DNA of 63,707 nt, the filler included, from Cercozoa sp. M6MM (lineage: Eukaryota; Protista; Endomyxa: Ascetosporea): assembly GCA_040357565.1 (NCBI GenBank). It is 8 parts of 8 records of this genome, joined end to end, with 100 filler letters (N's around TTAATTAATTAA, not from the genome) between each part and the next. Parts side by side here need not be neighbours in the genome. Positions count along the whole stretch, not along the records: positions 9,696 to 37,751 come from JBDODJ010000141.1; 7 more parts are not named here. The stretch is one strand, 5' to 3'. The notes under the pieces are model-generated. The model saw only the letters and a program-made list of their open reading frames with translations, was not told where the DNA came from and made no database searches. This document shows positions 22,101-28,100 of this stretch, one piece after another. Positions within the stretch are counted from its first letter, which is position 1; each line of letters begins with the position of its first letter. The translations under genes and the position numbers were made by a program.

Positions 22101-25100
22101 CGACACCGTGCGGCAACTCGCTCCAACTGATGGCGCGCTGCTCATCGATGAACACGGCGACCTTGGCCTTCTCGGCCGACTTCTCCTTAAGCACCGACAC
22201 GGTACTGTCACACAAGTGGATCAGCATCGAACATCAATTCACGTCTTTTTGGAGGGAAGGAGGGAAGGAGGGAAGGAGGAAAAGAAGGAAGGAAATACAG
22301 AGTCGCCTCCGAGACTACAAGCGAGGGACTCGTGCGATGACCACAGCCGTCCAGAGTGAGACGGAGACATGGCGCGTCCTCCTGCTTGATAACGTCGAGT
22401 CGCAGGCCGTCGGCACTCAGCAAAAGTGCTTCGTCCGGACACTTCCACGTCGACGGCACAAGTAGTCTCGCCTGCGTGGCAACGCCCTCCAGCGGCTCGT
22501 CGGTACTCTTGGTGGACACGATGCGCACCTGGCCTTGCACCAGACCACACGAACCGATGACAAGCTGCTCCTTCTGCGGCAGCGCCTCCATCACGAACGG
22601 TGCCTACACAGGTTAGGTTTGGTTATGCAGAAACCTTCTCTCAAAACACACTCTCGCAGAAGGAGACTCACCTCATCCAAAGCACGCACGACGTGATCCT
22701 TCAGCAGGCACGCCTTGTTGACAGTGGTCGGAGTCTCTTCTTCCATCGCCTTGTCCAGGAGCACCTCCTCCACACCGACGACATCAGACATGCACCACAT
22801 AGCCTTCGACTTGTCCTCATTCGCTGCTCAAAAACGCTTACCACTGAAACAACGAGCAGGCAAAACTACGAAAAGTAAAAGTACCGAAAACACCGCCAAA
22901 GAGGCCTGACGGTTCATCTTCCGAAGTATCTTCCGGGGTCACGAATTTGACAGAAGGAACGAGCGTCAAACTTGGCGGAGACTACGCAAGAGCAACAAAA
23001 AAGAATCACGAACAAGTATCGCCACACGAGAAAGGTACAACGGCAGTGGCAGACGCAGTCGGCGGTTCGACAATGGCGAGTTCCGGCTGCGCAGGCTGCT
23101 TCTTGACGGTGCCGTACACCTCGAAACCGCTCAGGGCCTACAACAAAACGACAAACCATGCAAATTGGAAGAGTCCCTCCTGTCAAAGCTCAAGATACAA
23201 GTGTGAAGTTGCCACTCGAGTTGTGGCCAGTGATGGACAGACGGAATCGGTCGAAGAAGCGCGGATTCTCGTCGCTGTCGTCGGGAATCTCCACAGGGAA
23301 CGAGAACGGCTGGCCGGCGAACAGCAACGACTCGTCCTGCGCACTCACACACGCAGAAAACATAACACACATACACAGCGAAAGCTTGCGCAGTCTTCGC
23401 GTACCGTAGTGTGACTGGCAATCGTCGTCCAGTCGCCATCCGGGCCAAGCGCGGCCTCGAGACTCCAGTTTCGAAGCAGACACTCGTCGTTCTGGGTCCA
23501 ATGACGCAGCGAATACAGCGTCGGACGAATTTGGTGCTTTCTTAGCGTCCACTGAATGCTCGGCTGACTGACCTCATCGTTCGGCTCAACTGCAAAGACG
23601 CGAGGCGGTTGCTTGCTGTCCGACAGCAAACTCATCGGCGACGATCCGTCCGTGACAGTGCCGGCGCACTCCACGAGCACTGCGTTGCCAGAGCACGCAG
23701 GTGACGCCAAGAAGTCTTGGCCTCCGAACGGGTAGTTCTGCACATGTGCATATACTCACAGTGTAGAGAGATTGAGAGAGGGACTACAGTACCGGTGCAA
23801 AAGAGAGCAGCTCTTCGTCCTTTTCATCCTCCTTCTGCTCCTCCTGCTTGTCCTGAACAGCTTCGTCTGCGGCAACACACGGAGACTCCGGTGCAACCAG
23901 TTTGCCCGTGCGCAGTCCTTCGCGCGTTGCGACGGCGCGTGCCACCACCTAAACCAACACGACATATCACTGACACAAAAGAGTCGAACAGACTTTAAAA
24001 AAAAAATCACTTCGTCTGGCAGAGTTTCAAGCGGCGCACGCAGGTCCATCTGAGCTATGCGACTGCGGATCGTTTCTTCGCAAGCCGAACGTAAAAGCAA
24101 AAGGTCACATACAGACAGTCACCAAAAACTGGAAAATTGAACATACCGTAGATAGGCAGGACGTCTTGATTGACCACCTTCAACGGTCGCGTCGCAAGAA
24201 CGCTCAGGCAGCGCAGGGCATCCTCGCGGTTCGATAGCTGCACCAAACACACACACACACACACACACACGTACACACAACAAGCAAAACACTCGTCCCT
24301 CCCTAACACACAACATCAGCGGTACATCGCGCAGGTTGACGTCCTTTCGCTCCAACAGGGCAGCGAGGCAGTCCAAGACGCGTCTCGCAAGTGCCTGTTG
24401 TCGTGCCGAATATACACCGCGCGCATCCGACTTTTCGTCAATGTGTGAGACACATTTCGCGAGTCGCTCAACAAGCAACACGGCCACCTCCTTGGCCTAC
24501 AAAAAAGATTGTGTTTGGCGCCTACACTCGTTGCGGTCTTCATAGCTGGGTACCTGTTCGGGCGACAGAACGGCGCTGCTGCAGAAAGGAACGCTGGCCA
24601 CCTGCGACGGGTTGCGGCTTTCGACCAGATCCTCGGCACCCTCGGCTTGAGGAACTTTGAAAAACATGAGGTACACTTTTTCCGGTACAAAAAAGCACAG
24701 GTGTGAATCATGATACGGATGCCAGCCACAAAGTCGGCGCTCTCCTCGAACGTCAGACGCATGCACAGAACTCTCGGATCGCTCGTGCCGGAACCGGGTT
24801 CGAACGGGAAGGCCGTGTAGTGACTAAGCACACCCATCGATTCACAGATGACCAAACCAAATATGACAGAAAGAGATCGCAGTACGTGTCCGTACGGGCA
24901 CGCCAGGCACGGTTGGTGCCGACGTTCACACCAGCGGCACGACCACCAGACGAGTATCCCGTGTTCGAGTTGCTCGTATCAATTATCAGGTTGCTGCGAC
25001 CGTCGTAGTAGAACGGCGTCTCGAGCTCAAACGTCGTGAACGACTACAAAAGGTAGAGGAAATGTGCCAATGCGGGGTTTCGAGACATGCATTCGAGACA

Positions 25101-28100
25101 TGCATGGTCACAGACCTGAAAGGCAGGGTACCTGTAGCTGCATGTGAGTGTTGGAGATGTGTTTCGGACCGTAGCACACAGTGAGATCGGACGGGAAGCC
25201 AGTCAGCTGATCTTGCGACGTCGTGCCGAGCGCGATACGGAGTGCCGACATGTCGCGACCAGACGCCTGTTCGCAGAAAAACGAAACGCTCTTGATCATA
25301 CCTGGTCCGCTGACGCCGGCATCCTTCAGTTCACTCGCGAGGTACAGCGACGTGTAGCGGAACGAGTAGTCATTCGTGATGAAAGCCTCCACGGTTTCCT
25401 TTCTGCAGAGACAACAATATGTCTCGAAATAGCCACTTTAACTCTAGACACCTGTTGTACCGATCCAGGGCCGGGTACTCGACATCGGACTGCGACAGCT
25501 GCGGCGTCGTTCCTGGCTTGTAATTGTCCTCCAACGACACCAGAAGACCACGCTGAGGAGCCATGTTCGGCTTAGGACGAAAGTCGACGAGGCCACCCAC
25601 CTGCAGTCGCTCCGAGAAGCTGCCAAGCAACGCGAGCGCCGACTGCAGTTCAGGTCCGTCCATTTGTTCGAGAGCCTCCTTCAGAACCTTTCTGAACAGC
25701 AGTTCGTTCCACTTGGGCGCACTGATCCACGCTCTCAGGGCAGACACAGCGCACGATGCCTCCTTGGACTGTGAGAGCATCGTCTCGTACGACACGTCGC
25801 TCTTGGGAAGCACTGCCTGCGACACGCGCGATAGCAGCACGTGCAAGAAGTCCTGCCACGTGAGGCCAAGCTGCAGGTTGTCGAACTCCTTTGGCTCGAT
25901 GTGGTTCAGCAGCGTGCCAAGCATGCGGTAGGCGAGTGGACGCGGGTAGGGGACCTCCGTCTCCTGCACAAGACGGAGCAGACGCGACATGAGCTGCTTC
26001 GACGCGACAGTCATGCGGCGTATGTGGCTGCTCGAGCGAAGGGCGTTGCCAAACTCACAGAACTACAGTATATGTAGGTGAGAATACAACGTAGACATAT
26101 CTTCCGTGGTGAAATACCAGCTGGCGTTGGAAGATATCCCTTTCGGCAAGCGACAACGGGCCAGACGGCTGCATCTCCTCAACGACAGCCACAGGCTTCT
26201 GCTCGAAGCCAAAGGAAACGACAGGAATCTCCTGACAAGCACTGCCATTGTCCGGGTTGAACGGGAACATCGTGTAGTGCGTGTCGCATCGGCCTCGGAA
26301 GCCACGACCAGCCGTGGTCTGCAAACACGCGTACTAAATAAACACAGACGCTTTGGCATGAAGGAGCACAAAGGTACGTTGAAACCGCGCAAGTTGCCGC
26401 CACTACAAAACATCAAATCTTCCAAAAATGGAGGAAGGAACCGCAGGCTACCTGGTGTATCCGCTGCCAGCGTTGCTGACGTCAACCACCAAGTTGCGAC
26501 TGGTGTTCCAGACGAACGGTTGCGACAGCGTCACCTTGTACGGCTTGCCCATAACCACCGCCGACTGCGGGACCTCCACCTAATTTGGGGCAAAATACAC
26601 AGTGGCATCTAATGAGTCAGGATAAGAAACAAGAAGTAGTACCGGACCAAAGACGACTTGCACGTCATTGTCGAACGACGAGAGCGTCTCTGAGTCTGTC
26701 TCGCCGAGCGCAACACGGAAGCACACCATGTCACGACCAGGTGCAGCCGTGGGGAAGAAGGACACGGTCGTGACCACACGGATCTCGGGCGCGTCCTCGC
26801 TCGACTCAACCATCGGCTACAGAAATTTGCGAATCGCAACCACATCAAACCTTAATTTAGAGCTAAATAATACATCAGCTTCGTTGATTTCGGAGGGCAG
26901 GTAAATGCCTTGGTAACGGAAGCAGTAGTCACTGCACATTGGGACAGGTCAGCAAAGATAAAACAAAACCCAAACTAGAAAATGTGGAGTACCGGGTGGT
27001 GAACGCGTCAATGTTGCCACCAGGCTTGCCCTGGTACGGCGACACATCATCGCTGCCAGGAGCACCGAAGCTCAGCGAAACCTGACTGTCCTCGGCGTCG
27101 TACTTGAACCAACCTAGATATGCTTTCTAGCACCAAAACCCAGAGGATTCAAGTCGAAAACATACCATTCGGCAACTCGCTCAGCGAGGCACTCGTCTTG
27201 CGCTCTTCCCACACACTCGGCTCAACGGCAGACTCGGCAGACTTGGCCACTTCAGTCGGCTTCGCACGAAGGCCACCGTACAACTCGACACACGACAGCG
27301 CGAGGAAGCTGTGCCCAGAGCTGCACCAACCGACAAGTCACAAGTAGAGGTCAGGCAAAGCTCAGCTAAGTGAAGCGTACCTGTTCTTGCCAATCTGCGA
27401 CACGCGGAAGGCAGAGTAAAACTTGCTCAAGTTGTCTTGCCACTCGCTTTCGCTAATGCCTTTGACCACACAAGAGAATGCTGTTTCCTTATACTCAAAC
27501 AACCGAAACTACCCTCAGGCTGCTGCAGCTTGTAGGTAGCAGTGCTTCCTGTTTGAGCAGCAAGTCGGTCGTCATCCTTGTGCTGACTGAGCACGACCCA
27601 GGTGTCCTCGGAGCCGACCTGCTTGGCGCGAATTTCAAAGTTCTTGATGCGCTCTGACGCGAAGCTGCTGTAGTGCATGAAGGAGAAACCCTGGAGTTGC
27701 ACAGTGTGTTTCTCGAACTCCACTTGCAGCCTGCATCGAGGTGCATACGTATCGACGAGGTAGGAGCAAAGGTGTAAAGTAAATTGATACCAGGCATCCG
27801 ACTCGGACTTGGTGACAACACGGGCCGTCTTGCGACCGACCAGCGGGTTCAGCGACTCGACACGGTCACCCAGCGATGAGGCAGTCACCGTAACCAGACC
27901 GGCATCCGCCGGGTTCTTGTACTCATCGTCGAGTGTGGCCAGATGGTACTGTGCAAAGGTACAGATGCTGGGTTTAATCAAGAATACAACAGCAATACCA
28001 GGATGCCAGTGGTGCCAAAGTCCTCGTTGCTGGGCTTGAACTCCTCGACCTCGAACTCCTCGCCCTCTTCAGTCTCGGTAGCAGCAGCAACAGCAGCATC

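Follow-up and report, generated by a model that had tools for sequence, protein, structure and literature searches.

Two intron-split copies of a bacterial-type domain within a predicted giant HECT ubiquitin ligase of the amoeba Lemnamoeba sinaloensis

Introduction

How might a domain of bacterial type have come to lie, in two copies, in the middle of a giant eukaryotic ubiquitin ligase, and what could it be doing there? The locus that raises this question belongs to a stretch of 63,707 nucleotides from Cercozoa sp. M6MM (GenBank assembly GCA_040357565.1), which joins eight parts of that genome end to end. We refer to the whole stretch as the window, and all positions below count along it. One of its parts is a contig of 28,056 bp (JBDODJ010000141.1, window 9696-37751) from the 23.6-Mb assembly. 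The minus strand of this contig encodes a HECT protein of 3974 amino acids (aa), deposited as a 'hypothetical protein' (MES1911421.1, MHM6MM_003850) and called P0001 here. Cercozoa sp. M6MM is the former name of Lemnamoeba sinaloensis, a marine amoeba that was obtained from fish gills and belongs to the Rhizaria, where phylogenomics places it in the Apofilosa (PMC11069148; PMC13746701).

A first-pass annotation of this DNA had described two intron-split copies of a bacterial-looking beta-sandwich domain in P0001 and had proposed that they were acquired long ago to sense substrates. The analysis reported here leads us to a similar picture. The best overall explanation, and in our judgement a probable one, is that a bacterial-derived module was recruited to a HECT ligase, was duplicated and now acts in the recognition of a ligand or substrate. 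We are considerably more confident of one part of this, namely that a bacterial-type module is truly built into the amoeba gene, which we regard as very likely indeed.

Results

Two copies of one module

The features on which the argument depends are as follows.

16124..32807, minus strand: the whole P0001 gene (MES1911421.1, 3974 aa), with 71 exons and 70 introns, from an exact mapping of the deposited protein to the window
26196..27012, minus strand: the first module copy (copy 1), aa 1381-1556, divided into six exons by five introns and scoring 97.8 bits with a profile of non-eukaryotic family members
27012-26993, 26931-26874, 26816-26643, 26579-26452, 26402-26378 and 26318-26196, minus strand: the exons of copy 1
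25393..26195, minus strand: the spacer between the copies, 230 aa (aa 1557-1786), largely a single 600-nt exon
24736..25392, minus strand: the second module copy (copy 2), aa 1787-1955, divided into three exons by two introns and scoring 136.7 bits with the same profile
25392-25132, 25043-24886 and 24823-24736, minus strand: the exons of copy 2

We read the exons exactly as the deposited model has them, and every peptide quoted in the first-pass annotation was found on the minus strand, joined to the next by canonical GT-AG introns. The module is about 170 aa long. Its copies align over 175 positions with 37% identity (blastp E 3e-42), which bears out the internal duplication that had been claimed. 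Together they hold seven introns, all of them GT-AG, and not one position is common to both copies, again as had been described; copy 1 also contains a 25-nt micro-exon (26402-26378). The spacer is present as well, although its 230 aa fall short of the 250 or so first given, and it has no family match in Pfam. A six-frame search of the 23.6-Mb genome that took the opening exon of copy 2 as its query matched that exon itself and copy 1 only (E 1.1e-6).

Several properties of the copies speak of their age. There are 2.8 introns per 100 aa in copy 1 and 1.2 in copy 2, with the value for the whole gene (1.8) lying between them, and the G+C content at third codon positions (GC3) is 0.74 in the modules versus 0.72 in the remainder of the gene. 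Intron density, host-like GC3 and the divergence of the copies point to a long residence in the amoeba lineage, in agreement with the suggestion that the acquisition was old. In the domain tree the two copies are sisters (ultrafast bootstrap 99, SH-like approximate likelihood ratio test 98; supports are given in this order below). They are thus each other's closest relatives, and the duplication therefore postdates the entry of the module into the amoeba lineage.

Contamination deserves attention in this organism, as M6MM was grown on agar together with bacteria and its draft assembly was decontaminated afterwards, with 0.6% of genes still flagged by NCBI (PMC11069148). We nevertheless reject bacterial contamination or an assembly chimera as the source of the module exons and give it a negligible chance, because seven spliceosomal introns cut the modules, their GC3 is that of the host, the copies have diverged from one another, and both lie in the middle of a 28-kb contig with eukaryotic domains on the same strand on either side.

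The modules and the HECT domain in one predicted gene

The rest of the protein includes three further domains.

16580..17934, minus strand: HECT catalytic domain, aa 3575-3868, Pfam PF00632 (E 1.3e-53)
27263..28022, minus strand: discoidin/SUN-like domain of galactose-binding type, copy A, aa 1136-1314, weak in Pfam, 36% identical to a domain of the HECT protein P0118 (E 9e-25)
23102..23689, minus strand: discoidin/SUN-like domain, copy B, aa 2173-2325, like copy A a match to that P0118 domain (38% identity, E 1.4e-19)

The domain order is thus discoidin/SUN-like (1136-1314), module 1, the 230-aa spacer, module 2, discoidin/SUN-like (2173-2325), about 1250 aa that are unannotated, and finally HECT. 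The description of the protein as a giant HECT ligase holds up well: the catalytic cysteine is aa 3840 (window 16730-16728, minus strand, context H-T-C-F), the nearest solved chain to the HECT domain is that of HECTD3 (E 1.9e-42), and in the deposited model the module exons and the HECT exons belong to one gene.

The flanking domain had been called SUN/discoidin. The label itself is weak, as both Pfam matches stay below their cut-offs (Sad1_UNC, E 0.051, 14.1 bits against a cut-off of 22; F5_F8_type_C_2, E 0.052, 14.6 bits against 27.8), and a search by sequence for a solved relative found none. The domain stood up better than its name. Judged by its sequence conservation it is a genuine domain, present twice, with one copy on either side of the module pair. 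The P0118 protein that shares it is a HECT and SPRY protein of 4229 aa from a sequencing-run assembly, and the nearest HECT relative of P0001 that we found. It has a discoidin-like domain and a HECT domain, and the module is absent from it.

Are the modules and the HECT domain encoded by one gene? This is what is predicted by the deposited, transcript-trained model together with a gapless chain of exons. The alternative is that the model fuses neighbouring genes and that the modules lie outside the ligase gene. Such an error is conceivable in a predicted model, about 1600 aa with no annotated module or catalytic domain separate copy 2 from the HECT domain, and the C-terminus of the model already looks over-extended. 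However, the 71 exons lie on one strand and the gaps between them are only introns (49-342 nt, median 61 nt) for all 70 of which a GT-AG solution exists, so that there is no space for a promoter or a terminator. The genome is also very compact, with 6% intergenic sequence (PMC13746701), its annotation was made by funannotate with the help of transcript reads (PMC11069148), and the discoidin-like domain that flanks the modules recurs in another HECT protein, P0118. We consider a fusion very unlikely.

The end of the gene merits a remark of its own. The deposited model splices onward past the HECT domain (window 16656-16124, minus strand) and so appends about 106 aa. The unspliced frame past the exon end at 16656 runs into a stop near 16638, roughly 30 aa beyond the catalytic cysteine, which is a usual HECT C-terminus. 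The annotated tail of about 106 aa may be a prediction error.

The contig also contains extended (CA)n/(GT)n arrays, at 9697-9913, about 14650-14950 (with a run of Ns), 19300-19420, 28900-29250 and other places; the contig end and the 342-nt intron 15 are among their sites. These are in keeping with the unusual simple-repeat load reported for this compact, repeat-rich genome (PMC11069148; PMC13746701). The downstream neighbour (window 12666-11800, minus strand) is a gene for a cyclophilin-type peptidyl-prolyl isomerase (Pfam PF00160, E 7.7e-32).

A new and largely bacterial domain family

Relatives of the module were sought with a profile in which three separate exon pieces formed separate rows, searched against 1.84 billion representative sequences. 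At E<=1e-3 this gave 115 proteins, and a screen of these matches found no HECT domain besides that of P0001. It had been said that the module was unfamiliar from HECT ligases, and this is also how it appears here. Nor do the best matches prove to be widespread eukaryotic domains of HECT or HERC proteins: the bacterial matches are significant and a single other eukaryotic carrier was found.

The reverse comparison gives the same relationship. A profile of 172 positions was built from 147 instances, with both eukaryotic proteins excluded. It aligns with copy 1 over positions 8-170 and with copy 2 over positions 8-168, and matches the whole of P0001 with E 7e-66 (Z = 1.8e9). A smaller alignment of 16 short non-eukaryotic proteins, searched against the 23.6-Mb amoeba genome, matches nothing but the four larger module exons (E 2.4e-21 to 4.6e-6), two in copy 1 (1.6e-8 and 4.6e-6) and two in copy 2 (2.4e-21 and 2.4e-11). 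Of the 25 columns with the highest conservation in the family, 18 are retained in copy 2 and 13 in copy 1, compared with a bacterial median of 19 and a range of 12-23.

Curated collections do not hold this domain. No model in Pfam, NCBIfam or PHROGs covers the module, in Pfam searches of single exons and of P0001 and in NCBIfam and PHROGs searches of bacterial members. A word-indexed protein search with an 86-aa exon gave no match either, within a length window that leaves out long carriers. The module is also distinct from GEVED, with which it keeps company in bacteria: GEVED (PF20009) has no match in P0001, and in the family member P0014 it lies at 2517-2594, separate from modules at 1786-1892 and 2184-2274. 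The Atlas protein search offered weak leads only, from a module exon to Bacteroidota clusters (0.96) and from the fungal module described below to phage clusters (0.88). By these sequence comparisons the module is a new domain family, one with no curated model though common in surface proteins of the Bacteroidota type.

The bacterial setting named in the first-pass annotation, that of proteins secreted by the type IX secretion system (T9SS) with GEVED or fn3 domains, and of Cloacimonadota, was recovered in full: the family is overwhelmingly bacterial and extracellular. Its bacterial carriers are large secreted or surface proteins in which the module often forms the N-terminal head or a tandem array. 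Its phyla include Bacteroidota, Cloacimonadota, Planctomycetota, Fidelibacterota and Paceibacterota. Among the matches with a named source, Planctomycetota contribute a C10 peptidase and an 'Ig domain' protein, and Chitinophagaceae contribute T9SS type A sorting proteins; the others are from Bacteroidia, Paceibacterota, Fidelibacterota and one unclassified bacterium. The top matches that are unlabelled have CHU_C or Por_Secre_tail sorting domains together with GEVED, MAM, fn3, CARDB, Ig_7, beta-helix, LamG or dockerin domains. Among 128 family proteins, 49 have a sorting domain of T9SS type at the C-terminal end, 46 have their first module no more than 100 aa from the N-terminus, and 79 contain two to six copies of the module.

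A genome scan extended the family to relatives in Chitinophagaceae, Flavobacteriales, Bacteroidales, Crocinitomicaceae, Cloacimonadota and Kapaibacterium, and a module match at E<=1e-6 occurs in 20 of 151 evenly drawn species genomes of Bacteroidota. Some bacteria possess the module in high number. Sixteen matches, spread over at least 10 open frames, were counted in a 2.1-Mb metagenome-assembled genome of Cloacimonadota (G002, which holds L019), and eight in Flaviaesturariibacter amylovorans JCM 17919 (G003), a cultured species. In the scan of these two genomes, one open frame of 4311 aa carries five copies in tandem.

A second eukaryotic carrier and the direction of transfer

Outside the amoeba, a single eukaryotic carrier was found: P0099 (KAI9189425.1), a protein of 1451 aa encoded on a 5.1-Mb contig of the fungus Blastocladiella emersonii. 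It has one module (678-857, 105 bits against the non-eukaryotic profile), long low-complexity regions rich in Q and H, and two BTB/POZ domains downstream of the module (about 955-1451). BTB proteins are substrate adaptors of CUL3 ligases. The presence of the module in two distinct ubiquitin-ligase architectures is the strongest hint that eukaryotes use it in target recognition.

A domain phylogeny had been proposed as a check on the acquisition, and its outcome is mixed. It unites the amoeba copies, as described above, and it yields no supported bacterial donor or nearer sister for them. They fall inside a group of 38 rows (93/91) that mixes sequences from Planctomycetota, Fidelibacterota and Paceibacterota. 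In the best tree the fungal copy stands apart from them, as sister to a metagenome protein, P0008 (99/87).

Could the traffic have gone the other way? The family might be ancient in eukaryotes, with vertical descent and massive loss, or it might have passed from eukaryotes to bacteria. Two distant eukaryotes, of the Rhizaria and the Blastocladiomycota, carry the module, the library that was searched is sparse in protist proteomes, and a single clade of all eukaryotic copies, which the best tree does not recover, is not rejected by the approximately unbiased test (p 0.217). We nonetheless find a eukaryotic origin quite improbable. Eukaryotes contribute two proteins to the family, compared with bacterial matches that represent at least five phyla and form well over 100 clusters at 50% identity; the best tree pairs the fungal copy with a metagenome protein and not with the amoeba copies; and the related HECT protein P0118 has no module. 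An old bacterial origin of the amoeba module appears to be the best reading, its direction being taken from this distribution.

The predicted fold

Evidence on the fold comes from the predicted structures of two bacterial members, P0032 and P0110. The module in the two-domain model of P0032 has a predicted local distance difference test (pLDDT) score of about 85-96, and the model of P0110, which consists of the module only, has a predicted template modelling (pTM) score of 0.81. Both are jelly-roll beta sandwiches. Foldseek matches of P0032 were dominated by its Ig domain, and the module-only P0110 was used instead.

The best solved neighbours of P0110 are the baseplate of phage phi812 (Z 10.3), the tail tip of Bxb1 (Z 9.9) and a lectin-like domain of Cwp84 (Z 9.7), followed by an acetylxylan-esterase domain of carbohydrate-binding module (CBM) type (Z 9.4) and a polyvinyl-alcohol esterase domain (Z 9.3). 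The PHR domains of eukaryotic ubiquitin ligases and adaptors come lower (MYCBP2 PHR1, Z 7.8; BTBD2 PHR, Z 7.3; MYCBP2 PHR2, Z 7.0), and numerous sandwiches of the CBM32/35, Eph, MAM and SUN types have Z of about 5. Against the PDB the best Foldseek E-value is 1.4e-3. Among predicted viral structures in BFVD, a protein of an uncultured Caudovirales phage (A0A6J5NL19) matches the module model at E 7.4e-8, with a template modelling score of 0.67 and 24% identity, and many minor tail proteins and collagen-repeat fibre proteins rank after it. The family may, on these models, also occur in phage tail proteins; a tblastn search of GenBank phages with the module-only protein gave no match, and neither did PHROGs. 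A binding role is suggested for the module because the neighbouring folds are cell-surface or polymer-binding domains.

Discussion

We can now sketch how the locus may have arisen and how its product might work. A jelly-roll module of about 170 aa would have reached the amoeba lineage long ago, most likely from bacteria. It would have joined the gene of a giant HECT E3 ligase resembling HECTD3 and then been duplicated within that gene; today each copy has spliceosomal introns and a codon usage like that of the host. HECT ligases use accessory sandwich domains such as DOC, SPRY and SUN in their choice of substrate, and to our knowledge none uses this module. In P0001 the modules lie in mid-protein, far upstream of the HECT domain, and most likely bind a ligand or substrate and deliver the target to it. 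The two modules and the two discoidin/SUN-like sandwiches could together form a recognition array that presents the target to the C-terminal HECT domain.

That the module acts in target recognition seems to us a probable reading of the models and of the domain arrangement. The nature of the target is harder to predict. A carbohydrate-type or microbial polymer is a tentative suggestion, to which we give somewhat less than an even chance.

The main competitor holds that the modules bind protein substrates or partners, as PHR, SPRY and DOC domains do, rather than glycans or microbes, and that their bacterial ancestry is uninformative about the ligand. It is an idea to be taken seriously: HECT ligases work in the cytosol and nucleus, where glycans are scarce, and the structural neighbours include PHR domains, those of MYCBP2 and BTBD2. 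The Blastocladiella carrier, too, is a BTB protein and resembles the BTB-BACK-PHR adaptors, in which substrate binding is expected of the PHR domain (bioRxiv 10.1101/575910). At the level of sequence, however, the Pfam PHR model (PF08005) has no match in P0001 (E<=1) or P0099 (E<=0.01), nor in the exons of the genome (E<=10, a weak result as the control genomes hold no PHR). Phage receptor-binding domains and domains of lectin or CBM type are better structural neighbours than PHR, and copy 2 retains the conserved residues of the family at the bacterial level. We look on a protein target as rather unlikely, and give a carbohydrate-type polymer a slight preference over it.

Several observations weigh against the proposal that a bacterial module was recruited for recognition. 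No family member has a known ligand. The tree is unrooted and has no supported bacterial sister, and the direction of transfer is drawn from distribution alone, while most database matches have no organism label and some could be eukaryotic. The structural Z values of 9-10 barely exceed a background of 7-8, and the jelly-roll fold of the amoeba copies is taken from predicted structures of their bacterial homologues. The joins between module and HECT exons come from a predicted gene model. Finally, copy 1 has lost several highly conserved residues (profile positions Gly104 and Gly30, for example) and could, judging from its sequence, be degenerate.

A more specific and more daring idea is that the ligase marks intracellular bacteria, which we think unlikely. 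The same degree of doubt applies to a wider version of it, by which eukaryotes would repeatedly have wired a surface-binding module of bacterial or phage type to ubiquitin ligases, of the HECT type in the bacterivorous amoeba and of the BTB/CUL3 type in the fungus, with the amoeba copies recognising polymers of the bacterial envelope or glycans of damaged phagosomes and directing ubiquitin to them. If it were true, the amoeba would possess a pattern-recognition E3 made from an adhesin domain of its prey. Should the ligand prove to be microbial or a glycan, the system would bear on the origin of cell-autonomous immunity in phagotrophic protists.

Whatever the ligand, the locus is an intron-validated case of a bacterial-type domain within a core regulatory enzyme of eukaryotes. 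The second ubiquitin-ligase architecture, in a distant eukaryote, suggests that the module is suited to target recognition by E3 ligases.

Comparison with known systems

HECTD3 and the other HECT ligases with DOC, SPRY or SUN domains likewise have HECT at the C-terminus and sandwich domains ahead of it. P0001 differs from ligases of the HECTD3 type in being four to five times longer, and in having a bacterial-type module that was found in no other HECT protein searched. The PHR domains of MYCBP2 and of BTBD1/2/3/6 are beta sandwiches too, and occur in E3 ligases or CUL3 adaptors. By the Pfam model there is no sequence match between them and the module, and their Z of 7.0-7.8 to the bacterial member is in the range of a common arrangement.

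The Blastocladiella protein resembles P0001 in that its module lies within a protein of ubiquitin-ligase type. Unlike P0001 it has two BTB/POZ domains in place of HECT, a single module and another position in the tree.

Among structures, the best neighbours of the bacterial members are the distal domains of phage tail fibres and baseplates, the lectin-like domain of Cwp84 and the acetylxylan-esterase CBM (Z 9.4-10.3). For the phage domains this is a likeness of fold, seen through the bacterial homologues, whereas a match at the sequence level is absent in PHROGs and in the tblastn search of phages.

Close counterparts are the bacterial carriers, of which the named ones include three proteins of metagenome-assembled genomes, HEY4800128.1 (Bacteroidia), MDQ7778636.1 (the C10 peptidase of Planctomycetota) and MFQ6615865.1 (Fidelibacterota), and the T9SS proteins P0135 and P0136 of Chitinophagaceae. 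The amoeba modules are homologous to theirs over the full length of about 170 aa and have in common with them the motifs Q-x-x-Y-L-x-S-E-L-x-x-A-G, G-R-D, Y-G-P, P-F-x-W-D-G-x-S-N-L and S-G-G and a late D. In bacteria the module is extracellular, has no introns and is combined with sorting signals and adhesin-type domains, whereas in the amoeba it is intracellular by context, split by introns and fused to a HECT ligase.

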